Source: Botryllus schlosseri
Taxonomy: Eukaryota
Assembly: GCA_051294905.1 (NCBI GenBank)
Contig: CM119373.1
Span: 32,612,001-32,676,000 of the forward strand
Direction: 5' to 3'
DNA length: 64,000 nucleotides
Below are positions 1,850-59,407 of the stretch, in pieces (position 1 is the first letter of the stretch; the number at the start of each line of letters is the position of its first letter). The position numbers and the translations under genes are program-made. The notes under the pieces are model-generated. The model worked only from the letters and a program-made list of their open reading frames with translations. It was not told where the DNA came from and did not search any database.

Positions 1850-1974
1850 GAATTGGGGCAGTGGTCAACCGGATAACTATGAAAACGAAGATTGCGTCGA
1901 GCTCTATGATGAGATCCATGGAGACTGGAACGATATTTCATGTGACAAAACTCTATTATACATTTGTGAAAAAG
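1850..1974 (+). CDS. Exon encoding the C-terminal half of a C-type lectin domain (QPD...WND)
   Basis: tttag acceptor at 1848-49 and gtaaac donor at 1975. Translation NWGSGQPDNYENEDCVELYDEIHGDWNDISCDKTLLYICEK has the W-x3-QPD, C, WND-x2-C and YICEK CTL pattern. The exon ends in phase 1, matching the downstream EGF exons. Confidence 0.9.
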
Positions 1975-2610
1975 GTAAACCCTTGGCTTAGTGAATTCAT
2001 TGAGGTATGGTATGCATATTGCATGGTGTTCGTGTTTTGTTTTGATGTTGTTTGGATGCGGAACCGTAACGTTGGTTCATCACTGAAAAACTGATGTAAT
2101 TACGTTCTTGATGACTAAACTCCAACGCAGAGCTGTTGAATTATTGCGACCTCAATGCAGTGACCAAATATCCACTACCGAAAATCAAGCCTTCTACGTT
2201 TATAGCTATTATTCTTTCGTTTTCCGAACGACACAATCCCGGAACAAATGTAATGATGTATAAATAAAGAGTAGAAAAAACGTGCAGATATTGCCAACTC
2301 GTATTATTAGCCTTCCGTTGTTCTTGCTTTCTGTTAAAGAATATGAGTGACCACAATAATTTTTATGCAACACACGTTTATGAGCATGAGCACTTCAATA
2401 TAGGAAGAGTTCCTTCTTGGTGATACAGAACCTCAGTATACAATTGAATGGTATATTCTAAATGATAGGAACCCGAACATTTTCGGCTGATACTCGTCTG
2501 GGGTAATCGTCAGCAACTAGTAGAGAATTGGAAAGGACATTGTATATCAACAATCGTATTACAATATAACATAACGGCCGAGGTATCGGTATGTTGTTAT
2601 GACAGTAGAC

Positions 2611-5248: not shown

Positions 5249-5399
5249 CCATACAACAACCACATAGCCTCGGACTTAGAAAATGCTATTGTTATGTTCG
5301 TGCATTTTACGTTGGTATCGTTTGTTTCTCATTTGCGTAGGATTAGTAATTACCGCCAATCATTATTTCCTCGTGTGTCGTGCTTGTATTTATACCCTG

Positions 5400-7683: not shown

Positions 7684-7736
7684 TCTTATGGGTGCGTTGA
7701 CATATGTCGTACTTTCGGGTGTAGGCATCGCTCGAC

Positions 7737-12116: not shown

Positions 12117-12445
12117 ATGTGGATGAATGTGCAGTAGATATAGATAATTGTGCCGAAAACACCGCAACATGTACCAATACCGTCGGGTCGTTCACATGCG
12201 GCTGTAATAATGTATATTCTGGGGATGGATCGACTTGTCAAGGTTTACTTGACTTATATGCGACGTTTTACTTTGTAGATGATGTTGTATACCATTTAAG
12301 TCTTAAATGATCTTGATAGATGTAGATGAGTGTGCAGTAGATACAGATAATTGTGCCGAAAACACCGCGACATGTACCAATACCGTCGGGTCGTTCACAT
12401 GCATCTGCAATGATGGATATTCTGGGGATGGAATGACTTGTCAAG
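12117..12445 (+). CDS. cbEGF array 1, exons 1-2 (12117-12242, 12320-12445)
   Basis: 126 nt phase 1-1 exons with a 77 nt GT-AG intron. D-V-D-E-C-x6-C-x6-C-x8-C-x-C-x10-C with the Ca-binding and Asn-hydroxylation consensus. Confidence 0.92.
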
Positions 12446-12522
12446 GTTTGATTGAATTACGTCCGATTTTTTTTCCTAATGAATGTTGATATTACTATTG
12501 AAGTTTTAAATGATGTTTATAG

Positions 12523-12631
12523 ATGTGGATGAGTGTGCATCAAGCACAGATAATTGTGCCGAAAACACCGCAACATGTACCAATACCGTCGGGTCGTTCA
12601 CATGCAGCTACAATGAAGGATATTATGGGGA
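12523..12631 (+). pseudogene. Broken cbEGF exon 3 (Cys5->Tyr, 3' end and donor lost)
   Basis: The acceptor is intact. The translation is ...SFTCSYNEGYYGD, then unrelated sequence from ~12632. Array-type intron sequence resumes only at ~14030. Confidence 0.85.
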
Positions 12632-13126
12632 TTTCTTGCTTTTAATACTGCAACCCCTTTGCGAAAATGAAAGAACGCCTAATGTATCAGATTGAGTCTA
12701 ACTCTATTCGCGATTACGATACAAAGTGTCGTTCAACATATGCTACCTTGCGTTTGCGCTCGCAGAAAAACCGTCGACTATGAAACTTAGCCACAAAATG
12801 ATTGACGCATGGTGGCCGAAGCTTTCGATATCGATATGCCCAGGCGCCGAATAGCCCATTCCTTGCAAGCTGAACCCAGCGATATATAGCAGGCCCGCAA
12901 TATAGTCATGCGACAATATTATTCACCTATGAACTTCAAAAAATTTTCGCGCCTCGTGCGGCTAGTCGCCCGCTCAATAGTTCGTCAATCAAATGTGGCC
13001 CTTTGGCTGAAAAGGTTGGCCACCCCTGGGCTAAAGTGTCAGATCGGCGCACATCTCCCATATACGACCTTGATAACGAAATTACTGTCCTAATAATTGA
13101 GTGTCAACCTTGAGACTTGGCACAGC

Positions 13127-13612
13127 GTTCGATACTAAAATAAAGACATACCGTACAAAAGCTCAATGACGGATCTAGGTAAGGAACATCGTTAAAGTAA
13201 ATACAGACCAATACCGGCTTTGCGTAAAATCTGTCAGCGATAAATGACCAGTCAGCTCTCACTCGACTTAGGAAACGAAATTACCACTAACAAAGTTCAG
13301 TGACAAACTTAAAACTTGTTAGAGCGTTCCATACTAACATTAGGACTAACCGTGCCCAATGCCTTGACCGATCTCGGTATGGAACATCGTCAAAATCAAT
13401 GGATACCAATACCGGCTTTTCAGTAAAATCTGTTTGCGATACATGACGGATCAGCACAGACTCAACTTCGGAAATGGAATTACTACCCTAATCTCCAAGT
13501 AGAAACCCTGAAACTTCGGGCACTGTTAAATACCACCATCACGACATAACATAGCAAGTTTCAAGAATTATCATGGTGTGAAACACCATCAAAATCGACC
13601 AATACCGGCAAA
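13127..13612. repeat. Diverged ~195 bp tandem repeat, about 2.5 copies
   Basis: ccaataccggc recurs at 13208, 13406 and 13599 with shared flanks (ggaacatcgt, gtaaaatctgt). Confidence 0.7.
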
Positions 13613-14089: not shown

Positions 14090-17000
14090 ATGTGGATGAG
14101 TGTGCATCAAGTACAGATAATTGTGCCGAAAACACTGCAACATGTACTAATACCGAAGGGTCATTCACATGCAGCTGCAATGATGGATATTATGGGGATG
14201 GAATGACTTGTCAAGGTTTGAATGAATTACATCCGACTTTTTTCTTTGCAGATGATGTTGCATGATATTGAATCCTCGAATAATCTTTTCAGATGTAGAT
14301 GAATGTACAGTAGATACAGATAATTGTGCCGAAAACACCGCAACATGTACCAATACCGTCGGGTCGTTCACATGCATCTGCAATGATGGATATTATGGGG
14401 ATGGAATGACTTGTCAAGGTTTGTTTGAGCTACGTCCGACTGTTTTCCTAATGGATGTTTTTATAAACTATTGAAGTGGTAAATGATGTTGATAGATGTG
14501 GATGAGTGTGCATCAAACACAGATAATTGTGCCGAAAACACCGCAACATGTACCAATACCGTCGGGTCGTTCACATGCATCTGCAATGATGGATATTATG
14601 GGGATGGAATGACTTGTCAAGGTTTGTTTGAACTACGTCCGACTGCTTTCTTAATGGATGTTTTTATATACTATTGAAGTGGTAAATGATGTTTATAGAT
14701 GTGGATGAGTGTGCATCAAACACAGATAATTGTGCCGAAAACACCGCAACATGTACCAATACCGAAGGGTCATTCACCTGCAGCTGCAATGATGGATATT
14801 ACGGGGATGGAACGACTTGTCAAGGTTTGAATGAATTACATCCGACTTTTTTCTTTGCAGATGATGTGGCATAATATTGAATCCTCGAATTATCTTTTCA
14901 GATGTAAATGAATGTACAGTAGATACAGATCATTGTGCCGAAAACACCGCAACATGTACCAATACCGTCGGGTCGTTCACATGCGGCTGTAATAATGGAT
15001 ATTCTGGGGATGGATCGACTTGTCAAGGTCTCCTTGACTTATATGCGACGTTTTACTTTGTAGATGATGTTGTATACCATTGAAGTCCTAATTTATCTTG
15101 ATAGATGTAGATGAGTGTGCAGCAGATACAGATAATTGTGTCGAAAGCACCGCAACCTGTACCAATACCGTCGGGTCATTCACATGCATCTGCAATGATG
15201 GATATTCTGGGGATGGAATGACTTGTCAAGGTCTGATTGAATTACGTCCGATTTTTGACCTAATGGATGTTGATATCACTATTGAAGTGTCAAATGATGT
15301 TTATAGATACGGATGAGTGTGCATCAAGTACAGATAATTGTGCAGAAAACACCGCAACATGTAATAACACCGTCGGGTCGTTCACATGCAGCTGCAATGA
15401 TGGATATTCTGGAGATGGAATGACTTGTCAAGGTTGATTGAATTGCATCCGACTTTATTCTTTCCTGATGATGTTGCATAATACTGAATCCATGAATTAT
15501 CTCTTCAGATGTAGATGAATGTGCAGTAGATACGGATAATTGTGCCGAAAAGACAGCAACCTGTACCAATACCATCGGCTCGTTCACATGCATCTGCAAT
15601 GATGGATATTCTGGGGATGGAATGACTTGTCAAGGTTTAATTGAATTACGTCTGATTTTTTTCCTAATGGATGTTGATATTACTATTGAAGTGTTAAATG
15701 ATGTTTATAGATGTGGATGAGTGTGCATCAAGTACAGATAATTGTGCTGAAAAAACCGCAACATGTACCAATAACGTCGGGTCGTTCACATGCATCTGCA
15801 ATGATGGATATTCTGGGGATGGAATGACTTGTCAAGGTTTGAATGAATTACATCCGACTTTTTTCTTTGCAGATGATGTTGCATGATATTGAATCCTCGA
15901 ATAATCTTTTCAGATGTAGATGAATGTACAGTAAATACAGATAATTGTGGCGAAAACACCGCAACATGTACCAATACCGTCGGGTCGTTCACATGCACCT
16001 GCAAAGATGGATATTCTGGGGATGGAATGACTTGTCAAGGTTTGATTGAAATACGTCCGATTTTTTTCTAATGCATGTTGATATTACTATTGAAGTGATA
16101 AATGATGTTTATAGATGCGGATGAGTGTGGATCAAGCAAGGATAATTGTGCGGAAAACACTGCAACATGTACTAATACCGAAGGGTCATTCACATGCATC
16201 TGCAATGATGGATATTCTGGGGATGGATTGACTTGTCAAGGTTTGATTGAATTACAACCGACTTTTTTCTTTGCAGATGATGTTGCATGATATTGAATCC
16301 TCGAATATTCTTTTCAGATGTAGATGAATGTACAGTAGATACAGATAATTGTGCCGAAAACACCGCAACATGTACCAATACCGTCGGGTCGTTCACATGC
16401 ATTTGCAATGATGGATATTATGGGGATGGAATGACTTGTAAAGGTTTGATTGAACTACGTCCGACTGTTTTCCTAATGGATGTTTTTATATACTATTGAA
16501 GTGGTAAATGATGTTTATAGATGTGGATGAGTGTGCATCAAACACAGATAATTGTGCCGAAAACACCGCAACATGTACCAATACCGTCGGGTCGTTCACA
16601 TGCATCTGCAATGATGGATATTATGGGGATGGAATGACTTGTCAAGGTTTGTATGAACTACGTCCGACTGCTTTCTTAATGGATGTTTTTATATACTATT
16701 GAAGTGGTAAATGATGTTCATAGATGTGGATGAGTGTGCATCAAACACAGATAATTGTGCCGAAAATACCGCAACATGTACCAACACCGTCGGGTCGTTC
16801 ACATGCATCTGCAATGATGGATATTCTGGGGATGGATTGACTTGTCTAGGTTTGATTGAATTACATCCGACTTTTTTCTTTGCAGATGATGTTGCATAAT
16901 ATTGAATCCTCGAATTATCTTTTCAGATGTAAATGAATGTACAGTAGATACAGATAATTGTGCCGAAAACACCGCAACATGTACCAATACCATCGGGTCG

Positions 17001-20000
17001 TTCACATGCGGCTGTAATAATGGATATTCTGGGGATGGATCGACTTGTCAAGGTCTCCTTGACTTATATGCGACGTTTTACTTTGTAGATGATGTTGTAT
17101 ACCATTGAAGTCCTAATTTATCTTGATAGATGTAGATGAGTGTGCAGCAGATACAGATAATTGTGCCGAAAACACCGCAACCTGTACCAATACCGCCGGG
17201 TCATTCACATGCATCTGCAATGATGGATATTCTGGGGATGGAATAACTTGTCAAGGTCGGATTGAATTACGTCCGATTTTTGACCTAATGGATGTTGATA
17301 TTACTATTGAAGTGTCAAATGATGTTTATAGATACGGATGAGTGTGCATCAAGTACAGATAATTGTGCTGCAAACACCGCAACATGTACTAACACCATCG
17401 GGTCGTTCACATGCAGCTGTAATGATGGATATTCTGGAGATGGAATGACTTGTCAAGGTTGATTGAATTGCATCCGACTTTATTTTTACCTGATGATGTT
17501 GCATAATACTGAATCCATGAATTATCTCTTCAGATGTAGATGAATGTGCAGTGAATACAGATAATTGTGCTAAAAAGACAGCAACCTGTACCAATACCGT
17601 CGGGTCGTTCACATGCATCTGCAATGATGGATATTCTGGGGATGCAATGACTTGTCAAGGTTTAATTGAATTACGTCTGATTTTTTTCCTAATGGATGTT
17701 GATGTTACTATTGAAGTGTTAAATGATGTTTATAGATGTGGATGAGTGTGCATCAAGTACAGATAATTGTGCTGAAAAAACCGCAACATGTACCAATAAC
17801 GTCGGGTCGTTCACATGCATCTGCAATGATGGATATTCTGGGGATGGAATGACTTGTCAAGGTTTGAGTGAATTGCATCTTACTTTTTTTTCTTTTTTAA
17901 TGATGTTGCATATTATTGAATCCTTGAATTATCTTTTCAGATGTAGATGAATGTGCAGTAGGTACAGATAATTGTGCCGAAAACACAGCAACATGTGCCA
18001 ATACCGTCGGGTCGTTCACATGTATCTGCAATGATGGATATTCTGGGGATGGATCGACTTGTCAAGGTTTACTTGACTTATATGCGACGTCTTACTTTGT
18101 AGATGATGTTGTATACCATTTAAGTCATAAATGATCTTGATAGATGTAGATGAGTGTGCAGTAGATACAGATAATTGTGCCGAAAACACCGCAACATGTA
18201 CCAATACCGTCGCGTCGTTCACGTGCATCTGCAATGGTGGATATTCTGGGGATGGAATGACTTGTCAAGGTTTGTTTAAACTACGTCCGACTGCTTTCTT
18301 AATGGATGTTTTCATATACTATTGAAGTGGTAAATGATGTTTATAGATGTGGATGAGTGTGCATCAAACACAGATAATTGTGCCGAAAATACCGCAACAT
18401 GTACCAACACCGTCGGGTCGTTCACATGCATCTGCAATGATGGATATTCTGGGGATGGATTGACTTGTGAAGGTTTGATTGAATTACATCCGACTTTTTT
18501 CTTTGCAGATGATGTTGCATGAAATTGAATCCTCGAATAATCTTTTCAGATACAGATGAATGTACAGTAGATACAGATTATTGTGCCAAAAACACTGCAA
18601 CATGTACTAATACCGAAGGATCATTCACCTGCAGCTGCAATGATGGATATTCTGGGGATGGAATGAATTGTCAAGGTCTGGTTGAATTACGTCCGATTTT
18701 TGACCTAATGGATGTTGATATTACTATTGAAGTGTCAAATGATGTTTATAGATACGGATGAGTGTGCATCAAGTACAGATAATTGTGCTGAAAACACCGC
18801 AACATGTAATAACACCGTCGGGTCGTTCACATGCAGCTGCAATGATGGATATTCTGGAGATGGAATGACTTGTGAAGGTTGATTGAATTGCATCCGACTT
18901 TATTCGTTCCTGATGATGTTGCATAATACTGAATCCATGAATTATCTCTTCAGATGTAGATGAATGTGCAGTAGATACGGATAATTGTGCCGAAAAGACA
19001 GCAACCTGTACCAATACCGTCGGGTCGTTCACATGCATCTGCAATGATGGATATTCTGGGGATGGAATGACTTGTCAAGGTTTAATTGAATTACGTCTGA
19101 TTTTTTTCCTAATGGATGTTGATGTTACTATTGAAGTGTTAAATGATGTTTATAGATGTGGATGAGTGTGCATCAAGTACAGATAATTGTGCTGAAAAAA
19201 CCGCAACATGTACCAATAACGCCGGGTCGTTCACATGCATCTGCAATGATGGATATTCTGGGGATGGAATGACTTGTCAAGGTTTAAATGAATTACATCC
19301 GACTTTTTTCTTTGCAGATGATGTAGCATGATATTGAATCCTCGAATAATCTTTTCAGATGTAGATGAATGTACAGTGGATACAGATAATTGTGGCGAAA
19401 ACACCGCAACATGTACCAATACCGTCGGGTCGTTCACATGCATCTGCAATGATGGATATTCTGGGGATGGAATGACTTGTCAAGGTTTGATTGAATTACG
19501 TCCGATTTTTTTCTAATGGATGTTGATATTACTGTTGAAGTGATTAATGATGTTTATAGATGCGGATGAGTGTGGATTAAGCAAGGATAATTGTGCGGAA
19601 AACACCGCAACATGTACTAATACCGAAGGGTCATTCACATGCATCTGCAATGATGGATATTCTGGGGATGGATTGACTTGTCAAGGTTTGATTGAATTAC
19701 ATCCAATTTTTTTCTTTGCAGATGATGTTGCATGATATTGAATCCTCGAATAATCTTTTCAGATGTAGATGAATGTACAGTAGATACAGATAATTGTGCC
19801 GAAAACACCGCAACATGTACCAATACCGTCGGGTCGTTCACATGCATCTGCAATGATGGATATTATGGGGATGGAATGACTTGTCAAGGTTTGTTTGAAC
19901 TACGTCCGACTGTTTTCCTAATGGATGTTTTTATATACTATTGAAGTGGTAAATGATCTTTATAGATGTGGATGAGTGTGCATCAAACACAGATAATTGT

Positions 20001-21316
20001 GCCGAAAACACCGCAACATGTACCAATACCGTCGGGTCGTTCACATGCATCTGCAATGATGGATATTATGGGGATGGAATGACTTGTCAAGGTTTAAATG
20101 AACTACGTCCGACTGCTTTCTTAATGGATGTTTTTATATACTATTGAAGTGGTAAATGATGTTTATAGATGTGGATGAGTGTGCATCAAACACAGATAAT
20201 TGTGCCGAAAATACCGCAACATGTACCGACACCGTCGGGTCGTTCACATGCATCTGCAATGATGGATATTCTGGGGATGGATTGACTTGTCAAGGTTTGA
20301 TTGAATTACATCCGACTTTTTTCTTTGCAGATGATGTTGCATGATATTGAATCCTCGAATAATATTTTCAGATGTAGATGAATGTACACATTGTACAGTT
20401 GATACAGATAATTGTTCCGAAAACACTGCAACATGTACTAATACCGAAGGGTCATTCACCTGCAGCTGCAATGATGGATATTACGGGGATGGAATGAATT
20501 GTCAAGGTTTGAATGAATAACATCCGACTTTTTTCTTTGCAGATGATGTTGCATAATATTGAATCCTCGAATTATCTTTTCAGATGTAAATGAATGTACA
20601 GTAGATACAGATAATTGTGCCGAAAACACCGCAACATGTACCAATACCGTCGGGTCATTCACATGCGGCTGTAATAATGGATATTCTGGGGATGGATCGA
20701 CTTGTCAAGGTCTCCTTGACTTATATGCGACGTTTTACTTTGTAGATGATGTTGTATACCATTGAAGTCCTAATTTATCTTGATAGATGTAGATGAGTGT
20801 GCAGCAGATACAGATAATTGTGTCGAGAACACCGCAACCTGTACCAATACCGTCGGGTCATTCACATGCATCTGCAATGATGGATATTCTGGGGATGGAA
20901 TGAATTGTCAAGGTCTGGTTGAATTACGTCCGATTTTTGACCTAATGGATGTTGATATTACTATTGAAGTGTCAAATGATGTTTATAGATACGGATGAGT
21001 GTGCATCAAGTACAGATAATTGTGCTGAAAACACCGCAACATGTAATAACACCGTCGGGTCGTTCACATGCAGCTGCAATGATGGATATTCTGGAGATGG
21101 AATGACTTGTGAAGGTTGATTGAATTGCATCCGACTTTATTCTTTCCTGATGATGTTGCATAATACTGATTCCATGAATTATCTCTTCAGATGTAGATGA
21201 ATGTGCAGTAGATACGGATAATTGTGCCGAAAAGACAGCAACCTGTACCAATACCGTCGGGTCGTTTAAATGCATCTGCAATGATGGATATTCTGGGGAT
21301 GGAATGACTTGTCAAG
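14090..21316 (+). CDS. cbEGF array 1, exons 4-39 (36 exons, 75-79 nt introns)
   Basis: Exon starts: 14090,14293,14496,14699,14902,15105,15307,15509,15711,15914,16115,16318,16521,16724,16927,17130,17332,17534,17736,17941,18144,18347,18550,18752,18954,19156,19359,19560,19763,19966,20169,20372,20584,20787,20989,21191. Each is 126 nt (20372 is 135 nt), AG/GT-bounded, open, with six conserved Cys. Confidence 0.93.
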
Positions 21317-21381
21317 GTTTAATTGAATTACGTCTGATTTTTTTCCTAATGGATGTTGATGTTACTATTGAAGTGTTAAAT

Positions 21382-22943
21382 CAGTGGTTCTTAACCTTTT
21401 TTCGTCCAGCGCCCCCTTTCAAAAATTATCGTGCTCCAGCGCCCCCCTCAACTTCATATTGTAAGGAATGTAATAAAGACAATGAGTAAGAGGGAGGGCC
21501 GTAACAGCACTTCGTCAACCCCCCTAAAAACGATTGCCTTGCACACCCATAGCGTGATAAATCGAATTTATAAGGGCTTCGCCCCCACGAACCCCATATC
21601 GTGATTTTGATGGTCAGCAAAGTTTGTGTGGCCTGGTCGCCCTAGGTACCAAAATTTGCTATAATGCATGGTAATTGCATATTTTCTATAATGTATGGTA
21701 ATTACATTTATAAGTCGCTATAAACTTTTTATCCTCTCAGCCCACGTAATCAGATTTACCAGTAGCACTGAGTGAGCTGTTGTATAGGAAAATAAGGGGC
21801 ACGTAATAATAATTAAACATATTCGGGCGTTCCCGCAGGTACAATTATTCGTTACCATGGCCGTAACAGCACTTCGTCAGCCCCCCTCCCCAAACATAAA
21901 ACGTTGGTCCTGGGCCCCCATCGGGTGATAAACCAAACTTCCGGGGACTTCTCTCCCAGACCCCCATTAGGATGTCCGCTATTTGCTGATAGCCTATTAG
22001 GTATCTACATTGGGTGTATATTTACTGAGGGAGCTATTCTCGCCTAGTCGCGCGAAGTGCGAAAAATTTCACTAATTAATGATTGAATTGGTCAATATCA
22101 TCGGGAATTGCATGTAAATTGAAATCAATTTTTATCCTCTCTCTGCTCACGTAAACACATTTACCGGTAGATCTGAGTTAGGTGCAATGTTCCCTCTAAG
22201 CTGCGCACGTGCGCAGTGCTGACACGGTCTCTGCGCACAGAAAATCTACGTTGCGCACAACAAATCCGGAGTTATTACCTTTTTTTAGTCGTTAGGCACT
22301 GTTGTCCAAGGGTGAGCGCAGTGAGTTCTTGAGTGTGCGCAGACTCATCAAAACTTAAAGCGAACATTGTGAGGTTTCTTGGAAGCTGTAGGGCCCGTTA
22401 CCAATAATTAAACATATTCGGGCAGGCGAACCCGTCGGTATGACCTCGTTGCATGATGTTATTTCGTGACCCCCTGTCTGCAATATCAAAAAATATAGAA
22501 TCGCTCAACGGGGATATCGCCTAACAGGAATGTCCCTGACGCCCAATCGTACTAAACTAAAAGACGCACACGATTTCAGATTGGTATTTCTTCACTGACA
22601 TATAATTTTTCCCTGCCAGATGGAATTCGTCTTCTGGGGTTCAGATTGCCAAGACAGGAACATTCGGTGTCAGTCATTTAGGCGGCCATGGCATGGACAA
22701 TTAAACCTATATGTATTTTGAAGGCTATATGTAACGAAGTTTTCGGTGTTAATTTGCTCTGAATACTCATTAAGGATATGTCCTATCACCACATCATCTA
22801 CTGCGAAGCCATTTTTCTCCAGCGCCCCCCATACCGCCCCCCTGAGCCCAGCGCCCCCCATATCGCCCCCTGAGCGTTTCCGCCCCCCTTCATAATCGCC
22901 AGCGCCCCCTGGGGGGCGCTGGGGGCAAGGTTAAGAACCACTG
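21382..22943. mobile_element. Non-autonomous hAT element (1562 bp) inside a 76 nt array intron, copy 1
   Basis: 17 bp TIR cagtggttcttaacctt; perfect TSD tgttaaat (21374-81, 22944-51). The empty site is seen in paralogous introns such as 27708-27783. Confidence 0.95.
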
Positions 22944-22962
22944 TGTTAAATGATGTTTATAG

Positions 22963-24516
22963 ATGTGGATGAGTGTGCATCAAGTACAGATAATTGTGCC
23001 GAAAACACCGCAACATGTACCAATACCGTCGGGTCGTTCACATGCATCTGCAATGATGGATATTATGGGGATGGAATGACTTGTCAAGGTTTGTTTGAAC
23101 TACGTCCGACTGTTTTCCTAATTGATGTTTTTATATACTATTGAAGTGGTAAATGATGTTTATAGATGTGGATGAGTGTGCATCAAACACAGATAATTGT
23201 GCCGAAAACACCGCAACATGTACCAATACCGTCGGGTCGTTCACATGCATCTGCAATGATGGATATTATGGGGATGGAATGACTTGTCAAGGTTTGTATG
23301 AACTACGTCCGACTGCTTTCTTAATGGATGTTTTTATATACTATTGTAGTGGTAAATGATGTTTATAGATGTGGATGAGTGTGCATCAAACACAGATAAT
23401 TGTGCCGAAAACACCGCAACATGTACCAATACCGTCGGGTCGTTCACATGCATCTGCAATGATGGATATTCTGGGGATGGATTGACTTGTCAAGGTTTGA
23501 TTGAATTACATCCGACTTTTTTCTTTGCAGATGATGTTGCATGATATTGAATCCTCGAATAATATTTTCAGATGTAGATGAATGTACACATTGTACAGTT
23601 GATACAGATAATTGTTCCGAAAACACTGCAACATGTACTAATACCGAAGGGTCATTCACCTGCAGCTGCAATGATGGATATTACGGGGATGGAATGAATT
23701 GTCAAGGTTTGAATGAATAACAGCCGACTTTTTTCTTTGCAGATGATGTTGCATAATATTGAATCCTCGAATTATCTTTTCAGATGTAAATGAATGTACA
23801 GTAGATACAGATAATTGTGCCGAAAACACCGCAACATGTACCAATACCGTCGGGTCATTCACATGCGGCTGTAATAATGGATATTCTGGGGATGGATCGA
23901 CTTGTCAAGGTCTCCTTGACTTATATGCGACGTTTTACTTTGTAGATGATGTTGTATACCATTGAAGTCCTAATTTATCTTGATAGATGTAGATGAGTGT
24001 GCAGCAGATACAGATAATTGTGTCGAGAACACCGCAACCTGTACCAATACCGTCGGGTCATTCACATGCATCTGCAATGATGGATATTCTGGGGATGGAA
24101 TGAATTGTCAAGGTCTGGTTGAATTACGTCCGATTTTTGACCTAATGGATGTTGATATTACTATTGAAGTGTCAAATGATGTTTATAGATACGGATGAGT
24201 GTGCATCAAGTACAGATAATTGTGCTGAAAACACCGCAACATGTAATAACACCGTCGGGTCGTTCACATGCAGCTGCAATGATGGATATTCTGGAGATGG
24301 AATGACTTGTGAAGGTTGATTGAATTGCATCCGACTTTATTCTTTCCTGATGATGTTGCATAATACTGATTCCATGAATTATCTCTTCAGATGTAGATGA
24401 ATGTGCAGTAGATACGGATAATTGTGCCGAAAAGACAGCAACCTGTACCAATACCGTCGGGTCGTTTAAATGCATCTGCAATGATGGATATTCTGGGGAT
24501 GGAATGACTTGTCAAG
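22963..24516 (+). CDS. cbEGF array 1, exons 40-47
   Basis: Starts 22963,23166,23369,23572 (135 nt),23784,23987,24189,24391; canonical splice sites, open frame. Confidence 0.9.
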
Positions 24517-24581
24517 GTTTAATTGAATTACGTCTGATTTTTTTCCTAATGGATGTTGATGTTACTATTGAAGTGTTAAAT

Positions 24582-26142
24582 CAGTGGTTCCTAACCTTTT
24601 TTCGTCCAGCGCCCCCTTTCAAAAATTATCGTGCTCCAGCGCCCCCCTCAACTTCATATTGTAAGGAATGTAATAAAGACAATGAGTAAGAGGGAGGGCC
24701 GTAACAGCACTTCGTCAACCCCCCTAAAAACGATTGCCTTGCACACCCATAGCGTGATAAATCGAATTTATAAGGGCTTCGCCCCCACGAACCCCATATC
24801 GTGATTTTGATGGTCAGCAAAGTTTGTGTGGCCTGGTCGCCCTAGGTACCAAAATTTGCTATAATGCATGGTAATTGCATATTTTCTATAATGTATGGTA
24901 ATTACATTTATAAGTCGCTATAAACTTTTTATCCTCTCAGCCCACGTAATCAGATTTACCAGTAGCACTGAGTGAGCTGTTGTATAGGAAAATAAGGGGC
25001 ACGTAATAATAATTAAACATATTCGGGCGTTCCCGCAGGTACAATTATTCGTTACCATGGCCGTAACAGCACTTCGTCAGCCCCCCTCCCCAAACATAAA
25101 ACGTTGGTCCTGGGCCCCATCGGGTGATAAACCAAACTTCCGGGGACTTCTCTCCCAGACCCCCATTAGGATGTCCGCTATTTGCTGATAGCCTATTAGG
25201 TATCTACATTGGGTGTATATTTACTGAGGGAGCTATTCTCGCCTAGTCGCGCGAAGTGCGAAAAATTTCACTAATTAATGATTGAATTGGTCAATATCAT
25301 CGGGAATTGCATGTAAATTGAAATCAATTTTTATCCTCTCTCTGCTCACGTAAACACATTTACCGGTAGATCTGAGTTAGGTGCAATGTTCCCTCTAAGC
25401 TGCGCACGTGCGCAGTGCTGACACGGTCTCTGCGCACAGAAAATCTACGTTGCGCACAACAAATCCGGAGTTATTACCTTTTTTTAGTCGTTAGGCACTG
25501 TTGTCCAAGGGTGAGCGCAGTGAGTTCTTGAGTGTGCGCAGACTCATCAAAACTTAAAGCGAACATTGTGAGGTTTCTTGGAAGCTGTAGGGCCCGTTAC
25601 CAATAATTAAACATATTCGGGCAGGCGAACCCGTCGGTATGACCTCGTTGCATGATGTTATTTCGTGACCCCCTGTCTGCAATATCAAAAAATATAGAAT
25701 CGCTCAACGGGGATATCGCCTAACAGGAATGTCCCTGACGCCCAATCGTACTAAACTAAAAGACGCACACGATTTCAGATTGGTATTTCTTCACTGACAT
25801 ATAATTTTTCCCTGCCAGATGGAATTCGTCTTCTGGGGTTCAGATTGCCAAGACAGGAACATTCGGTGTCAGTCATTTAGGCGCCCATGGCATGGACAAT
25901 TAAACCTATATGTATTTTGAAGGCTATATGTAACGAAGTTTTCGGTGTTAATTTGCTCTGAATACTCATTAAGGATATGTCCTATCACCACATCATCTAC
26001 TGCGAAGCCATTTTTCTCCAGCGCCCCCCATACCGCCCCCCTGAGCCCAGCGCCCCCCATATCGCCCCCTGAGCGTTTCCGCCCCCCTTCATAATCGCCA
26101 GCGCCCCCTGGGGGGCGCTGGGGGCAAGGTTAAGAACCACTG
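24582..26142. mobile_element. Same hAT element, copy 2 (1561 bp), produced by tandem duplication
   Basis: Near-identical to 21382-22943, with the same TSD and the same intron position. I saw only a handful of differences (a t>c in the left TIR, a 1 bp deletion, ggcggcc>ggcgccc). Confidence 0.93.
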
Positions 26143-26161
26143 TGTTAAATGATGTTTATAG

Positions 26162-34228: not shown

Positions 34229-34372
34229 ATTCAACTGTACAACAATCACAGCGCTAGTGTTTTGTGTATCTGTAAAATACAATGGTCATAATCAAAATAA
34301 TGAAAATTGCAAAAAAGTTGTGAAAGCAATATTTTTCGATCAACATACTGCACTGTATAAGCTCAATTATCT

Positions 34373-36712: not shown

Positions 36713-36810
36713 GGCCGTCTGTCGGCGTGAAACTTCACCGCGTTCGTTAACTCTGCTGTGTTCTGGCGAAATGCGTGGTACGCACGCGCATCCACTCGCG
36801 CGGCAAATAA

Positions 36811-37710
36811 TTGACCTCAAAAGACCTCTCTCTAGCAAATAGTTGGGGAAACTTTGATGATGTAATCTCAACTCCCGATTTTACAATGGAATTTTCCACT
36901 GACAAAAATGTTTTGACAAAGACCATACTCACATGTAATCACTTTCAGTGCATGCTGGAGTGCTGTTTTGACAAAGACTATATACTCACATGCGTGTACA
37001 GTACGTCTTGTGAACATAACATGCCTGAAACGGTGGATTTTTGCACAGAAATATTGCAGCTTCGCAATGATTTCCACGTTATTTGGGAATCTCAAGAAAG
37101 GATATTACGCAGTAATCAAGAAGTAATGAAGTATTTGAAGACAGTTGCTGATGACGTGAAAAAGCAGACTAGACGGACGGAAACGATTTATAAAATTTTC
37201 AAGAAACAATACGGCATCTTGGAGGACATACCCAGTATTATCATGGCAGATGAAGACAGCTATAAAAAAATCCTTCGCCGACCAAATGAACAGAGATTTT
37301 TGATCTCGGATGAGCTATACCACTTATTGCACTCCACGTGTGGCCTACGCAAACGAATTCTCAAAGATATTGTGATCATAGTGTTAATTGCCACATATAT
37401 GGATGTTCGAAATATACGAGTCTGCGGGACGAATCTTCAACTAGACGGCGACGCCATGTCAGAAATTTTGGGTGTTAGTTCCTTCAAACCAACGATCCGG
37501 CAAATGTGGAAGCTCCTGTATTATCGACATTGCGTCCCAGTGAGCGAAGTACAAGCAACAGAATTTAAAAGATCCCATCAGATCACATGGTCACAGCAAT
37601 TCGAACTTCAGAAGTCGAAATCGGAAGCTGTCATCCCAGAAACCGACGCCCTCTGGCAGATTGTAGGGGGAGCTGACCTTGACGAAGCCAGCAGCGGACA
37701 ACAGGCTTGA
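36811..37710 (+). CDS. Divergent ORF of unknown function inside the CACTG element (likely start ATG 36884 or 37021)
   Basis: 299-codon open frame in AT-rich DNA, between the transposase 5' end and the right TIR. It has a heptad-like segment (ILQLRNDF...ILRSNQEVMKYLKTVADDVKK). I recognise no domain. Confidence 0.6.
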   Translation: MTSKDLSLANSWGNFDDVISTPDFTMEFSTDKNVLTKTILTCNHFQCMLECCFDKDYILTCVYSTSCEHNMPETVDFCTEILQLRNDFHVIWESQERILRSNQEVMKYLKTVADDVKKQTRRTETIYKIFKKQYGILEDIPSIIMADEDSYKKILRRPNEQRFLISDELYHLLHSTCGLRKRILKDIVIIVLIATYMDVRNIRVCGTNLQLDGDAMSEILGVSSFKPTIRQMWKLLYYRHCVPVSEVQATEFKRSHQITWSQQFELQKSKSEAVIPETDALWQIVGGADLDEASSGQQA

Positions 37711-38140
37711 TTTGATCAGTGACAAATGACGAAAAATTCGACGGTTGATAATTGCCTGATATGATAGGTTGGAGAAGTAATAAAATCACAAGATTCATTG
37801 GTTGTCTTATATATGTGTAATGCTTTTCTGTAAGCCAGTGTGAGTAATAGCCAGGCGCGTAGCCAGCCGAAAAACAAGGGGGGGTTGAAATAAAAGGGGG
37901 TGCTGGTTTCGATTTTTTCCGAATTTAGTAACGTAGCATTGACTCATTAGGGTTAAGTACATGCGATGCGTAAACAACGATTATACAACATCCCCGTATT
38001 GGCGATTATAGACGTATGATAAGCTTGTCGACGAGTCCGAAAGTGCTGTTAATTAGCGATCCCTGATCTGTCGTGAACAATGAAATACGCACGCGTCGAA
38101 CATTTGAATACGCGCGCTTATCAACGCGCTGAGCAATTAA

Positions 38141-38295
38141 ATTCTCGGTAATGACCATTCTCGGTAATGTATATTCTCGGTAGGGTCCATTCTCGGTAAT
38201 GGTATTCTCGGTAATGTCCATTCTCGGTTGTGTCTATTCTCGGTAATGACCATTCTCGGTAAGGTTCCAGCTTCGGTAATGGTATCCTCGGTAAT
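38141..38295. repeat. 15-16 bp minisatellite (attctcggtaat core), about 10 copies, near the right end of the CACTG element
   Basis: Repeated (c/t)tcggt cores at 15-16 bp spacing. Confidence 0.85.
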
Positions 38296-38828
38296 TTCCA
38301 ACCTCGCATGCGGTTGACATCTCGCGTGACTCGGAATGCACTGAAAACGAGTCGACGTTTTGGGGAAAAAACTAGGAAACGGGTTGAATCGAGTCATATC
38401 CGAGCCTAAGCTCGGGATTTACCAAGGATATTTTTTACAGTGAATACGCATCCATCGGAGCATTTAAAAAGAGAAGAACTTCATTCATATTCCCTACCAT
38501 CGCTGTAATCTCGGAAATATAATTCGGATTGCCAAATCTATACCATTCGGCACCAGCCATATAGTCGCCTATGGACAACTAAACCTGTATGTATATAAAT
38601 GAAAGTTTTCGATCAGCATAACTTTCACCTGCATCAATGACGATGGATTTTACGTTCATCGATGTGCCGGAAATAAGAAATTCTTTAATGGCAAATTTTT
38701 TTTAGGACGTCAAAGTTTTCTTTATAACAGATAAAAAAGTGTTGTTCAATGTTTTTTATTGTTGCTAGTGGAATAATTGGTAAGTGTAACTAGAGTATTC
38801 GTATTCTATTTTTTTCGACTTATTTTAG

Positions 38829-39829
38829 ATGTGAACGAATGTTCTGAAGGACTACATTCATGTCACTATGACGCAACCTGTGCCAACAACGACGGCTCTT
38901 TTATTTGCGAGTGTGATACTGGTTATACCGGAGATGGTGAATCGTGTACAGACATTGACGAATGCTTGGAAGATTTTCACGAATGCCATTTCAATGCGAC
39001 ATGTTCCAATGATGAAGGTTCTTACATTTGTGAATGCGACAGTGGATATTCGGGAGATGGGGAATCTTGCACAGGTTTCACTAATGACCAGTTAAGTAAA
39101 TAGAATATATATTTCATTGCATATCCTGATTTCTTCAGATATCAATGAATGTTCCCACAATATACATAATTGTCATTCGAATGCCACCTGCATCAATGCC
39201 GATGGATTTTTCGTATGTCTATGCGACCTCGGATTCACCGGAAATGGGGAATTGTGTGATGGTAAGTGGCTCATGACGTCGCCGTCATCGTTATAACAAA
39301 TCAAAAAAGTATATTTCAATGTTTTTAACGTATTTAATGGAATATTTGGTATGTGTATCTGTGAATATCCCAATTATATATCTCGACTTATTTTAGATGT
39401 AGACGAATGTTCTGAAGTACTTCACACGTGTCACTACAACGCAACTTGTGGTAACAACGACGGCTCTTTTATTTGCGAGTGTAATTCTGGTTATACCGGC
39501 GATGGTGAATCGTGTACCGACATTGACGAATGCGTGGAGGATTTTCACGAATGCCACTTCAATGCAACATGTTCCAATGATGAAGGCTCTTACATTTGTG
39601 AATGCGACAGTGGCTATTCGGGAAATGGGATGACATGTACAGGTGTCATGATTGACCATTTTCGTGTTTGTTATATATATTTCATTGCGTATCATGATTT
39701 CTTCAGATATCAATGAATGTTCCAATAATTTACACAATTGCCATTCAAACGCTACTTGTGTCAACGCCGATGGATTTTTCATTTGTCGATGTGACCTCGG
39801 ATTCACCGGAAATGGGGAATTGTGTTATG
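38829..39829 (+). CDS. cbEGF array 2a: double-EGF exons 38829-39074 and 39397-39642, single-EGF exons 39139-39261 and 39707-39829
   Basis: 246 nt and 123 nt phase 1-1 exons with introns of 64, 135 and 64 nt; C-x6-C-x5-C-x8-C-x-C-x10-C; open. Confidence 0.92.
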
Positions 39830-45396: not shown

Positions 45397-45445
45397 CCCT
45401 AATTCCTAAAACAAATCAGCTCGCGATTACTATATGACTCATCAT

Positions 45446-47272: not shown

Positions 47273-47518
47273 ATGTGGACGAATGTACTGAAGAACTGCA
47301 TACCTGTCACGACAACGCGACTTGTGGCAACAACGACGGCTCTTTTATTTGCGAGTGTGACACCGGTTATACCGGAGATGGTGAATCATGTACCGACATT
47401 GACGAATGCGTGGAAGATTTTCATGAATGCCACTTCAATGCAACATGTTCCAATGATGAAGGTTCTTACATTTGTGAATGCGACAGTGGCTATTCGGGAA
47501 ATGGGATGTCATGTACAG
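47273..47518 (+). CDS. cbEGF array 2b: double-EGF exon
   Basis: tttag acceptor, 246 nt, gt donor; open, 12 Cys. Confidence 0.9.
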
Positions 47519-47582
47519 GTGTTATAACTTACCATTGTCGTATTTGTTATATATATTTCATTGCGTATCATGATTTCATCAC

Positions 47583-47705
47583 ATGTCAATGAATGTTCCA
47601 ATAATTTACACAATTGCCATTCGAATGCCACCTGCATCAATGACGATGGATTTTTCGTTTGTCGATGTGACCTCGGATTCACAGAAAATGGGGAATTATG
47701 TGATG
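47583..47705 (+). pseudogene. Single-EGF exon with its acceptor mutated from AG to AC (probably skipped)
   Basis: gatttcatcAC|atgtcaat here vs gatttcatcAG|atgtcaat in paralogs (55426, 57156, 58321). The frame is open and the donor is intact. Confidence 0.75.
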
Positions 47706-53964: not shown

Positions 53965-56900
53965 ATGTGGATGAATGTTCTAAAGGACTTCGTGCATGTC
54001 CCTACAACGCAACTTGTCGTAACAACGACGGCTCTTTTATTTGCGAGTGTGATATTGGTTATACCGGAGATGGCATAACGTGTACCGACATTGACGAATG
54101 CGGGGAAGAGTTTCACGAATGCCATTTCAATGCAACATGTTCAAATGATCAAGGTTCTTACATCTGTGAATGCGACAGTGGCTATTCTGGAAATGGGAAA
54201 TCTTGTACAGGTCTCATAAATGACCATTAAATTTTACATGTAATATATTTTCATTGCGTATCCGTATTTGTTAGATATCAATGAATGTTTCAACAATATA
54301 CATAATTGTCATTCGAATGCCTCCTGCATCAACGAAGATGGATTTTTCGTTTGTCGATGTAACCTCGGATTCACCGGAACTGGAGAATTGTGTGATGGTA
54401 AATTTTTCAAGACGTCGACGTTTTTTCATAACAAACCAACAAAATATTGGTCAATGTTTTGTTTTAATGTATTTAATGGAATCTGTGGTATTTGAATGTC
54501 TGAATATTTAGCATATATTTCTCGACTTCTTTTAGATGTAGACGAATGTTCTGAAGGACTTCATCCATGTCACTACAACGCAGCTTGTCGGAACAACGGC
54601 GGCTCTTTTATTTGCGAGTGTGATATTGGTTATACCGGAGATGGCATATCGTGTACCGACATTGACGAATGCGTGGAAGAGTTTCACGAATGCCATTTCA
54701 ATGCAACATGTTCCAATGATGAAGGTTCTTACATCTGTGAATGCGACAGTGGATATTCTGGAAATGGGAAATCTTGTACAGGTCTCATAAATGACCATTA
54801 AATTTTACATGGAATATATTTTCATTTCGTATCCGTATTTGTTAAGATATCAATGAATGTTCCAACAATATACATAATTGTCATTCGAATGCCTCATGCA
54901 TAAATGAAGATGGATTTTTCGTTTGTCGATGTAACCGCGGATTCACCGGAAATGGGGATTCGTGTGACGGTAAATTGTTCAAGACATCGACGGTTTTTTC
55001 GAACCAAACCAACAAAATCTTAATATTTTTTATATGTATTTAATGGAATACTTGGAATTTCAATGTCTGAAATTCAGACTCTCAATATCCACCATATACT
55101 TCTCGACTTCTTTTAGATGTAGACGAATGTTCTGAAGTACTTCATACATGCCACTACAACGCAACTTGTAGCAACTACGACGGCTCTTTCAGTTGCGAGT
55201 GCGATACTGGTTATGCCGGGGATGGTAAATCGTGTACCGACATTGACGAATGCGTGGAAGAATTTCACGATTGCCATTTCAATGCAACATGTTCCAATGA
55301 TGAAGGTTCTTACATCTGTGAATGCGACGATGGCTATTCTGGAAATGGGAAATCTTGTACAGGTCTCCTGAACCACCATTGTCGTATTTGTTCTATATAT
55401 TTCATTGCGTATCCTGATTTCATCAGATGTCAATGAATGTTCCAATAATTTTCACAATTGCCATTCGAATGCCACATGCATCAACGAAGATGGATTTTTC
55501 GTTTGTCGATGTAACCTCGGATTCACCGGAACTGGAGAATTGTGTGATGGTAAATTACCCAAAACGTCAACGGTTTCTTCGAACCAAACCAACAAAATAT
55601 TATTATGATTTAAATGTATTTAATGGAATACTTGGTGTTTCAATGTCTGAAATTCAGACTCTTAATGTTCACCATATACCTCTCGACTTCTTTTAGATGT
55701 AGACGAATGTTCTGAAGGACTTCATACATGCCACTACAACGCAACTTGTAGCAACAACGACGGCTCTTTCAGTTGCGAGTGCGATACTGGTTATGCCGGG
55801 GATGGTGAATCGTGTACCGACATTGACGAATGCGTGGAAGAGTTTCACGATTGTCATTTCAATGCAACATGTTCCAATGATGAAGGATCTTACGTCTGTG
55901 AATGCGACAGTGGCTATTCTGGAAATGGGAAATCTTGTACAGGTATCATAAATGACCATTAAATTACATGGAATATATATTCATTCCGTATCCGTATTTG
56001 TTCAGATATCAATGAATGTTCCAACAATATACATAATTGTCATTCGAATGCCTCCTGCATCAACGAAGATGGATTTTTCGTTTGTCGATGTGACCTCGGA
56101 TTCACCGGAACGGGAGAATTGTGTGATGGTAAATTTTTCAAGACATCGACGTTTTTTCATAACAAACCAACAGAATATTGTTGAATGTTTAGTTTTAAAA
56201 TATTTAATGGAATCTGTGGTATTTGAATGTCTGAATATTTAGTATATATCTCTCGACTTCTTCTAGATGTAGACGAATGTTCTGAAGGACTTCATACATG
56301 CCACTACAACGCAACTTGCAGCAACAACGACAGCTCTTTCAGTTGCGAGTGCGATACTGGTTATGCCGGGGATGGTAAATCGTGTACCGACATTGACGAA
56401 TGCGTAGAAAAGTTTCACGATTGCCATTTCAATGCAACATGTTCCAATGATGAAGGTTCTTACATCTGTGAATGCGACGATGGCTATTCTGGAAATGGGC
56501 AATCTTGTACAGGTCTCACAAATCACCATTGTCGTATTTGTTCTATATATTTCATTGCGTATCCCGATTTCATTAGATGTCAATGAATGTTCCAATAAAT
56601 TACACAATTGCCATTCGAATGCCACCTGCATCAATGACGATGGAGTTTTCGTTTGTCGATGTAACCTCGGATTTACCGGAAATGGAGAATTGTGTGATGG
56701 TAAATTATCCAAGAAGTAGACTGATTTTTCGAACCGAACCAACAAAATATTAATATTATTTAAATATATTTAATGGAATACTTGGTATTTCAATGTCTGA
56801 AATTCAGACTCCTAATATTCATCATATGCTTCTCGACTTCTTTTAGATGTAGACGAATGTTCTGAAGGACTTCATACATGCCACTACAGCGCAACTTGTA

Positions 56901-59407
56901 GCAACAACGACGGCTCTTTCAGTTGCGAGTGCGATACTGGTTATGCCGGGGATGGTAAATCGTGTACCGACATTGACGAATGCGTGGAAGAATTTCACGA
57001 TTGCCATTTCAATGCATCATGTTCCAATGATGAAGGTTCTTACATCTGTGAATGCGACGGTGGCTATTCTGGAAATGGGAAATCTTGTACAGGTCTCCTA
57101 AACCACCATTGTCGTATTTGTTCTATATATTTCATTGCGTATCCTGATTTCATCAGATGTCAATGAATGTTCCAATAATTTACACAATTGCCATTCGAAT
57201 GCCACTTGCATCAATGACAATGGATTTTTCGTTTGTCGATGTAACCTCGGATTCACCGGAAATGGAGAATTGTGTGATGGTAAATTAACCAAGACGTTAA
57301 CGGTTACTTCGAACCAAACCAACAAAATATTAATATTATATAAATGTATTTATTGGAATACTTGGTATTTCAATGTCTGAAATTCAGATTCTTAATATTC
57401 ACCATATACTCTTCGACTTCTTTTAGATGTACACGAATGTTCTGAAGGACTTCATACATGCCACTACAACGCAACTTGTAGCAACAACGACGGCTCTTTC
57501 AGTTGCGAGTGCGATACTGGTTATGCCGGGGATGGTAAATCGTGTACCGATATTGACGAATGCGTGGAAGAGTTTCGCGATTGCCATTTCAATGCAACAT
57601 GTTCCAATAATGAAGGCTCTTACATCTGTGAATGCGACGGTGGCTATTCTGGAAATGGGAAATCTTGTACAGGTCACATAAATCACCATTAAATTACATG
57701 GAATATATTTTCATTGCATATCCGTATTTGTTCAGATATCGATGAATGTTCCAACAATATGCATAATTGTCATTCGAATGCCTCCTGCATCAACGAAGAT
57801 GGATTTTTCGTTTGTCGATGTAACTTCGGATTCACCGGAAATGGAGAATTGTGTGATGGTAAATTATCCAAGACGTTAACGGTTACTTCGAACCAAACCA
57901 ACAAAATATTAATAATATTTAAATGTATTTAATGGAATAGGCCTACTTGGTATTTCAATGTCTGAAATTCAGACTCTTAATATTCACCATATACTTCTCG
58001 ACTTCTTTTAGATGTAGACGAATGTTCTGAAGGACTTCATACATGCCACTACAACGCAACTTGTAGCAACAACGACGGCTCTTTCAGTTGCGAGTGTGAT
58101 ACTGGTTATGCCGGGGATGGTAAATCGTGTACCGACATTGACGAATGCGTGGAAGAGTTTCAGGATTGCCATTTCAATGCAACATGTTCCAATGATGAAG
58201 GTTCTTACATCTGTGAATGCGACGGTGGATATTCTGGAAATGGGAAATCGTGTACAGGTCTCATAAATCACCATTGTCGTATTTGTTCTATGTATTTCAT
58301 TGCGTATCCTGATTTCATCAGATGTCAATGAATGTTCCAATAATTTACACAACTGCCATTCGAATGCCACCTGCATCAATGACGATGGATTTTTCGTTTG
58401 TCGATGTAACCTCGGATTCACCGGAAATGGAGAATTGTGTGATGGTAAATTATCCAAGACGTAGACTGTTTTTTCGAACCGAACCAACAAAATAATAATA
58501 TTATTTAAATATATTTAAATGGAATACTTGGTATTTCAATGTCTGAAATTCAGACTCTTAATATTCACCATATACTTCTCGACGTCTTTTAGATGTGGAC
58601 GAATGTTCTGAAGGACTTCAAACATGCCACTACAACGCAACTTGTAGCAACAACGACGGCTCTTTCAGTTGCGAGTGTGATACTGGTTATGCCGGGGATG
58701 GTATATCGTGTACCGATATTGACGAATGCGTGGAAGAGTTTCACGATTGCCATTTCAATGCAACATGTTCCAATGATGAAGGTTCTTACATATGTGAATG
58801 CGACGTAGGCTATTCTGGAAATGGGAAATCTTGTACAGGTCTCATAAATCACCATTAAATTACATGGAATATATTTTCATCGCGTATCCGATTTGTTCAG
58901 ATATCAATGAATGTTCCAACAATATACATAATTGTCATTCGAATGCCTCCTGCATCAACGAAGATGGATTTTTCGTTTGTCGATGTAACCTCGGATTCAC
59001 CGGAAATGGAGATTTGTGTGATGGTAAATTTTTCAATACATCGACTTTTTTTCATAACAAACCAACAAAATATTGTTCAATGTTTTGTTTTAATGTGTTT
59101 AATGGAATCTGTGGTATTCGAATGTCTGAATATTTAGTATGTATTTCACGACTTCCTTTAGATGTAGACGAATGTTCTGAAGGATTTCATACATGCCACT
59201 ACAACGCAACTTGCAGCAACAACGATGGCTCTTTCAGTTGCGAGTGCGATACTGGTTATGCCGGGGACGGTAAATCGTGTACTGACATTGACGAATGCGT
59301 GGATGATTTTCACGATTGCCACTTCAATGCAACATGTTCTAATGAGGATGGGTCTTACATTTGCGAATGCGACAGTGGCTTTTCGGGAAATGGGAAATCT
59401 TGTGCAG
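53965..59407 (+). CDS. cbEGF array 3: 10 double-EGF and 9 single-EGF exons (29 modules)
   Basis: Double (246 nt) starts 53965,54536,55117,55697,56267,56847,57427,58012,58593,59162. Single (123 nt) starts 54275,54847,55427,56006,56577,57157,57736,58322,58901. Introns are 62-65 and 138-153 nt, all GT-AG; frames are open. Confidence 0.93.

Follow-up and report, generated by a model that had tools for sequence, protein, structure and literature searches.

A stretch of 64,000 nucleotides of the Botryllus schlosseri genome (assembly GCA_051294905.1, contig CM119373.1, C3:32612001-32676000; hereafter the window) carries two types of tandem exons for calcium-binding epidermal growth factor-like (cbEGF) modules, preceded by one exon of a C-type lectin domain (CTLD). 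We propose, with a probability of roughly 0.6, that the window is the stalk-encoding middle of a single adhesion G protein-coupled receptor (GPCR) gene of ~175 kb and more than 100 exons, a reading drawn from sequence comparison. Its product would most likely sit in the membrane as an adhesion GPCR and not be a secreted or matrix rod. From the N-terminus, its chain would comprise a candidate signal peptide, a QPD-containing lectin domain encoded by three exons, 55 type-1 cbEGFs, 37 + 11 type-2 cbEGFs, mucin-like segments rich in Ser and Thr that include a cbEGF and an EGF, a GAIN/GPS region with an HL/T cleavage site and seven transmembrane helices. An earlier note on this DNA, made from the letters of the window, had pictured a lectin head on a long stalk of cbEGFs encoded by symmetric exons. 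That layout agrees with the sequence, and the lectin domain could be completed upstream, but a free, fibrillin-like rod would not fit the GPS and seven-transmembrane (7TM) exons that lie downstream. Coordinates follow the numbering of the window, with negative values upstream of its start and values >64000 downstream, and 100 kb on either side was examined.

In order to define the arrays, we scanned for stop-free exons that are flanked by AG and GT splice sites, begin and end in phase 1 and have a Cys count that is a multiple of six. This splice-aware scan identified 53 strictly intact type-1 exons (126 bp, 42 aa, six Cys, phase 1-1) at 12117, 12320, 14090-21316, 22963-24516 and 26162-27909. 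Two in-frame 135-bp variants at 20372 and 23572, which have a three-residue THC insertion and a seventh Cys, bring type 1 to 55 in-frame exons, or 56 units when one broken unit (12523) is counted. Type 2 consists of 13 double (246 bp, 82 aa, two cbEGFs each) and 11 single (123 bp, 41 aa) exons, and a twelfth single exon at 47583-47705 has an AC acceptor instead of AG. The sum for the window is 92 cbEGFs (55 type-1 and 37 type-2), or ~3,870 aa, and the motif D-x-D/N-E-C occurs 92 times on the + strand and 0 times on the - strand of the whole window. These figures, obtained with the scan and Pfam, match the earlier counts of 55 type-1, 13 double and 11 single exons and ~92 cbEGFs, all phase 1-1 and following a lectin exon that ends in phase 1, as well as the ~3,900 aa then claimed. 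Tandem Repeats Finder (TRF) reported a period of 203 bp, corresponding to one 126-bp exon plus one 77-bp intron, at 12115-12632, 14076-21372, 22943-24581 and 26142-27934. Both EGF_CA and EGF_3 were called on the modules by Pfam (EGF_CA with 5.7e-12 on type 1 and 2.5e-19 on a double exon), and the consensus sequences contain the six Cys of a cbEGF, the N-terminal D-x-D/N-E-C and the C-x-D/N-x4-F/Y-x-C between C3 and C4. Comparison with the Protein Data Bank (PDB) placed the EGFs of NELL2, uromodulin, ADGRE5, Notch1 and fibrillin as the closest solved relatives. Pfam detected no further domain between the modules in the window, as had been claimed, and the gaps between arrays are occupied by transposons.

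The lectin exon of the window (exon C) encodes only the final third of a CTLD. Its peptide contains QPD, E-N-E-D-C and WND and ends in ...YICEK at the donor AAG/GTAAAC, and its nearest solved relatives in the PDB comparison are calcium-dependent sugar-binding CTLDs. Searches with CTLDs placed exons A and B of the same domain 31.5 and 7.6 kb upstream, in compatible phases (1>0, 0>2 and 2>1 for A, B and C). Assembly of the three exons gave a stop-free sequence of 125 aa with the N-terminal Cys pair, the core, WIDGS, WND and the C-terminal Cys, which matched the CTLDs of the database proteins P0003 (8e-22) and P0047 with phmmer; the Pfam match is to exon C alone. From the QPD motif the domain is predicted to bind sugars of the galactose type. 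Overall it forms a phase 1-1 module, as do the EGF exons. Further upstream, at -35288..-35231, lies a candidate signal-peptide exon, MMGKVSTQWIFFTLFCITL, with the phase-1 donor GTAAGC, one of 24 heuristic candidates. A WND-like match at -23459 was considered as a lectin exon and dismissed as chance.

The exons found downstream are on the same (+) strand, spread over 27-75 kb past the window end, and all definable junctions from the lectin domain to at least 110.2 kb are phase-compatible. Beyond further cbEGFs and Ser/Thr-rich segments (Table 1), the region at 112-127.4 kb contains six exons that are shared with a paralog 200 kb upstream; scored singly, none of them hit Pfam GAIN. They are followed by a GPS exon (127464-127604, +; Pfam GPS 54.1 bits, E 2.3e-14), which ends in ...CECDHL/TNFAILV, and by seven TM-bearing exons (129088-138697), which align to the 7TM regions of P0047, P0079, P0110 and P0125. 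Against 7tm_2, again with exons scored singly, the scores were 26.7 bits (4e-6) for the TM3 exon and 15.6 bits for the TM6-7 exon, with a cut-off of 20.6. Comparison of the two paralog regions with blastn gave transposon matches only; conservation of the exons, through the putative GAIN region, GPS and TM1-7, emerged in tblastx, with the introns unaligned. The C-terminus most likely consists of the GAIN/GPS region and seven transmembrane helices of an adhesion GPCR, located 63-75 kb past the window. Both termini would thus lie outside the window, as the earlier note stated, and the choice between a secreted and a membrane-bound protein, which that note had left undecided, most likely falls in favour of the latter.

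Whole-genome searches found four loci on C3, all on the + strand, in which a lectin exon is followed by a type-1 array, a type-2 array and a GPS exon. The locus is not singular; it holds a giant array, but it is one of at least four tandem members of a lineage-specific family with one layout. Paralogs 1-3 are known from match coordinates, and since the searches score best candidates only, the numbers of exons given for these paralogs are minimum values. Only ~640 bp separate the type-1 from the type-2 array in paralogs 1 and 3, so that the 10.9-kb gap between the two arrays at the window locus is simply a transposon-filled intron. A database search of 1.84 billion representatives with a double exon returned 21,471 matches, the best 40-56% identical, and of the best 150, six are adhesion GPCRs and three have a CTLD. 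The protein P0047 (XP_078673398.1, a RefSeq model from a Branchiostoma hybrid) combines Lectin_C, 14 EGF_CA, GAIN and 7tm_2 in one chain, so the architecture proposed here has a counterpart. Fourfold collinearity, phase compatibility and this single-chain homolog would together favour one continuous chain at the window locus.

Several observations weigh against such continuity. Across transposon-filled introns of 10.1, 10.9, 7.4, 6.4 and 31.9 kb, and across a further ~12 kb ahead of the juxtamembrane exons, it depends wholly on collinearity and phase, and a repeated order would also be expected if two neighbouring genes had been duplicated en bloc. There is a frame change within the Ser/Thr-rich stretch at 99.0-99.96 kb, where no exon structure could be made out, and among the 1.84 billion representatives no protein is near-identical to the modules, none exceeding 56% with the double-exon query. 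Moreover, four bulk RNA-seq runs (1.0-1.9 billion letters each, 6-13% of every run, tissues unknown) yielded no clean reads and no splice joints for the 19 type-1 exons of 11501-17500, the type-2 array appeared in no indexed RNA run, and a search for PacBio RNA runs returned none; transcription was not supported in this sample. The reads that did align fell on repeats at 12.5-14.1 kb, in the spacer that separates the first three type-1 exons from the main array. They were partial, on both strands and 95-99% identical, with many loose ends, some of which carried sequence like that of a template-switch-oligo adapter; this spacer is most likely a transcribed repeat family with copies elsewhere in the genome. 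Four reads on the exon at 17130 have G>A at both 17140 and 17147, a combination absent from every copy in the window; a paralog or an allele is their probable source, and they were therefore left out as evidence of expression.

The duplicated neighbours would be a lectin-cbEGF rod, secreted or otherwise anchored and ending after 96 kb, and a separate adhesion GPCR from ~97-108 kb, the pair having been duplicated four times. We regard this as unlikely, although the RNA sample contains no transcript linking the two parts, giant EGF-only secreted proteins are frequent among the database matches, and from the last array exon to the next cbEGF exon there are 12 kb of transposon-rich DNA with Ser/Thr-rich open reading frames (ORFs). 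Neither a terminal exon nor a second signal-peptide exon was seen, and the first juxtamembrane exon (108148) starts in phase 1, like an internal module. P0047 unites lectin, cbEGFs and 7TM in one chain. Furthermore, the order has been kept in four paralogs of very different age, whose GPS identity ranges from 69% to 100%.

A second alternative, slightly less probable still, is that the window locus is a silent or decaying young paralog, with arrays that remain open mainly through recent duplication and gene conversion, and that a sister such as paralog 2 (C3:32.21-32.30 Mb) is the functional gene. Between paralog 2 and the window locus the GPS exon does not differ at all, and the type-2 exons are 95-98% identical. 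The missing RNA reads on the type-1 exons could be read in this way, as could the damage seen in the locus, namely one broken type-1 unit, one lost type-2 acceptor, two exons with a seventh Cys, large transposons in five introns and the frame change in the Ser/Thr-rich stretch. Nevertheless, the full set of Cys, the reading frame and the two splice sites are intact in 24 of the 25 type-2 and 54 of the 56 type-1 exons, although the type-1 units have diverged by ~10%. Mean divergence is 0.10 among type-1 exons and 0.25 among their 77-nt introns, which thus diverge 2.5 times faster, and the ratio of nonsynonymous to synonymous differences (pN/pS) among the 53 strict type-1 exons is 0.42. That only one of 56 units is broken at such divergence argues for selection on the reading frame, even if recent duplication and gene conversion may contribute to the low breakage. 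Defective symmetric exons could also be skipped, and the RNA sample covered just 6-13% of four runs from unknown tissues.

The size of the type-1 array appears to be recent. The 3.2-kb tandem segmental duplication at 19749..27772 consists of eight exons and a 1.56-kb transposon; identity is 99.28% between its copies 1 and 2 (3,200 bp, with 22 scattered differences and one gap) and 97.4% between copies 2 and 3 (1.63 kb), copy 3 differing by 2.6-3.2% and having no transposon. Outside these near-identical blocks the array units are 80-93% alike, and a higher-order motif recurs in the string of unit types. Forty of the 53 strict type-1 exons encode distinct peptides, with variability highest in the C1-C2 loop. 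This locus has 56 type-1 units, compared with at least 10-14 detected in the paralogs, which together with the 99.3%-identical blocks indicates that the array was enlarged several-fold through recent unequal crossover, a process that the earlier note had invoked for possible variation between alleles, and that unequal crossover alters module number over short time scales. An assembly over-expansion of part of the array, in which the blocks would be alleles or collapsed and re-expanded repeats and the true exon number lower, is very unlikely: tandem arrays are prone to assembly error and the 0.7% divergence of copies 1 and 2 falls in the allelic range of marine invertebrates, but the window has no gaps or N, the differences are scattered and include a gap, the third copy is more distant and lacks the transposon, and the rest of the array would be left unexplained.

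Adhesion GPCRs are thought to be force sensors that use their long ectodomains as levers. To our knowledge, known members of the class contain at most a handful of EGF modules. In the single-receptor reading, calcium-loaded cbEGF pairs would form a stiff rod, perhaps 0.3 micrometre long, that would hold the lectin far from the cell. Binding of the lectin to a glycan on matrix, cell or particle could then put force on the extracellular fragment, whereby the tethered agonist that lies behind the GPS cut would be uncovered and the 7TM domain activated. The symmetric exons would permit length variants through skipping or copy-number change. A bolder extension is a family of lectin-tipped 'fishing-rod' adhesion GPCRs with a calcium-stiffened rod of ~100 cbEGFs, whose reach would be tuned by exon copy number, which differs between paralogs and possibly between alleles, and by skipping, and which would serve as glycan-triggered, force-gated receptors of the recognition or allorecognition type that build on the GAIN-7TM switch; we hold this to be quite improbable. 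If it were true, individuals or cell types would each differ in the stalk lengths and the sequence of modules that they display. A sugar-binding head on ~100 stiff modules would in itself be an extreme natural case for relating stalk length to the force transmitted to GAIN, and the four tandem paralogs with their very different array sizes, together with the near-identical blocks, illustrate how the number of domains in a receptor gene is evolving through crossover of exon cassettes. If the gene is silent, it would be a clear case of an array ballooning in a redundant paralog.

In this single-receptor reading the locus would belong to a known type, the lectin-EGF adhesion GPCRs of invertebrate chordates, and what is extreme here is the module number. 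Adhesion GPCRs with C-type lectin N-termini have been described in amphioxus (Nordstrom et al. 2008, PMC2246102). The amphioxus P0047 has the same order of C-type lectin, cbEGF run, GAIN/GPS and family-B 7TM, and the GPS and TM exons of the locus align with it; it differs in having 14 cbEGFs and a WxxW-type N-terminal region, whereas the window locus has ~103 cbEGFs, two array types and mucin-like segments. P0047 is not an ortholog, and its modules are only 56% identical. Vertebrate EGF-TM7 receptors (ADGRE: CD97, EMR1-4), of which ADGRE5 came up in the PDB comparison of the modules, place cbEGFs on a mucin-like stalk before GAIN-7TM, and through splicing of EGF exons their isoforms differ in the number of EGF domains (PMC4419612). 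They have 2-7 EGF domains and no lectin domain, however, so that the lectin head departs from the ADGRE layout, and orthology to ADGRE is unlikely.

Fibrillins and LTBPs share with the locus long cbEGF runs, the one-residue linker in C6-x-D-x-D-E-C1 and stiff calcium-loaded rods, and some database matches of the modules are named 'LTBP4-like'. The locus differs from them by its lectin head and, most likely, by a 7TM tail, and its cbEGFs are about twice as many as those of fibrillin. Tblastn with 150 EGF-array proteins, including the LTBP4-named P0032 and P0068, gave no non-EGF match in the window, a weak test for TB (8-Cys) domains as it was made without an all-frame TB profile; on this ground membership of the fibrillin/LTBP group was set aside. 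Group XIV C-type lectins (thrombomodulin, CD93, CD248 and CLEC14A) start with a CTLD, after which come EGF or cbEGF repeats, a mucin-like stalk rich in Ser and Thr and a membrane anchor. Their genes contain few or no introns, and the proteins have 1-6 EGFs and an anchor of the single-pass type. The window locus has GAIN/GPS and 7TM exons after its Ser/Thr-rich ORFs, and a thrombomodulin/CD93-type assignment was rejected because the downstream 7TM is not a single-pass anchor. Change in repeat number by duplication is also seen in the ascidian vitelline-coat proteins HrVC70 and HaVC80, where close species have 12 and 13 EGF repeats (PMC9265791), and the concentration of variability in the C1-C2 loop of the type-1 modules is a further point of comparison with them. 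Unlike the product of the window locus, these egg-coat proteins have a ZP domain, roughly a dozen EGF repeats that are not identical, and neither lectin nor 7TM.

Within the family, the lectin exon of paralog 2 is only 63% identical to that of the window locus, in spite of its near-identical type-2 and GPS exons, which suggests a chimeric history with segmental duplication or gene conversion confined to the 3' two thirds. The 3' part (GAIN, GPS and TM) of the upstream paralog lies at -89215..-79260 (+), and a second, inverted copy with identical or nearly identical peptides lies at -65648..-57451 (-); the latter looks like a partial inverted duplication, head-to-head with the 5' end of the window gene. 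On another contig, C15:6213245-6294104 contains ~80 kb of type-1-like 42-aa cbEGF exons (57-67% identical, periods of ~2.4-3.7 kb), and 54 kb beyond this array, at C15:6348625, there is a GPS exon 82% identical to that of the window gene, one of the GPS exons on C15. The C15 locus may be an even larger relative.

Table 1 Features of the window, its flanks and the tandem paralogs (window numbering, except paralogs, which are in C3 coordinates).
Feature	Position	Strand	Evidence or remark
Lectin exon A (CPQGW...CYYFS...)	-29672..-29530	+	tblastn with CTLDs
Lectin exon B (...IIGFND...WIDGSPVEY)	-5756..-5647	+	tblastn with CTLDs; core IIGF in place of WIGL
Lectin exon C, third and last of the domain; phase 2 in, phase 1 out	1850..1974	+	Pfam Lectin_C 1.2e-7
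First two type-1 cbEGF exons, 126 bp each	12117..12445	+	splice-aware scan
Broken type-1 unit, fifth Cys and 3' part gone	12523..12640	+	exon inspection
Main type-1 array, 36 units of 203 bp: 35 of 126 bp, one of 135 bp (20372-20506, THC)	14090..21316	+	TRF, splice-aware scan
Type-1 block, 8 units, including the 135-bp variant at 23572	22963..24516	+	splice-aware scan
Type-1 block, 9 units	26162..27909	+	splice-aware scan
Type-2 first block: double, single, double, single	38829..39829	+	splice-aware scan
Type-2 isolated double (47273-47518) and AC-acceptor single (47583-47705)	47273..47705	+	splice-aware scan
Type-2 main block: 10 doubles and 9 singles, ~580-bp units	53965..59407	+	splice-aware scan
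Four double and three single cbEGF exons (11 cbEGFs)	91351-96007	+	splice-aware scan
Ser/Thr-rich ORFs	99.0-99.96 kb and 109.97-110.21 kb	+	ORF scan
cbEGF exon, phase 1>2, sixth Cys in the following exon	from 108148	+	phase analysis
EGF exon, phase 2>1	109208-109338	+	phase analysis
Ser/Thr-rich exon, phase 1-1	109970-110209	+	phase analysis
3.2-kb tandem segmental duplication (8 exons and 1.56-kb transposon), two full copies and one partial	19749..27772	+	self-alignment
1.56-kb repeat element, intronic, copied along with the block	21381..22943; second copy 24581-26142	.	alignment
LTR-retrotransposon fragment (RNase H, integrase-like), intron ahead of lectin exon C	3..1079	-	Pfam RT_RNaseH 2.6e-22
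Large transposon, intron between type-1 and type-2 arrays	28497..38442	.	ORFs
LINE-type element (endonuclease/reverse-transcriptase ORFs), 32-kb intron after the last window exon	60511..62434	+	Pfam Exo_endo_phos_2 2e-8
Long LTR-retrotransposon (gag, protease, reverse-transcriptase and integrase-like ORFs), intron after the exon ending at 59407	74000-85600	-	
Paralog 1	lectin 32,034,328; type-1 32,042,602-32,046,847; type-2 32,047,490-32,085,676; GPS 32,114,239	+	
Paralog 2	lectin 32,214,263; type-1 32,223,567-32,226,315; type-2 32,237,757-32,270,571; GPS 32,297,866	+	at least 14 type-1 exons
Paralog 3	lectin 32,450,435; type-1 32,455,239-32,457,743; type-2 32,458,381-32,503,705; GPS 32,522,803	+	
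Paralog 4 (window locus)	lectin 32,613,850; type-2 window blocks and downstream; GPS 32,739,464	+	56 type-1 units
LTR, long terminal repeat; LINE, long interspersed nuclear element.

The transposon between the two arrays (28497..38442) contains an intact 835-aa ORF on the - strand with a weak match to Plavaka transposase and a 299-aa ORF on the + strand with no Pfam match. A further copy of the 1.56-kb element, 94-95% identical and in the opposite orientation, is found ~100 kb into the same locus. Two other repeats were observed in the window: a ~600-bp repeat at 2603-3200, which has more than 40 copies over the chromosomes at 84-88% identity, and a non-coding 197-bp tandem repeat at 63220-63651 (2.2 copies, 80% matches).

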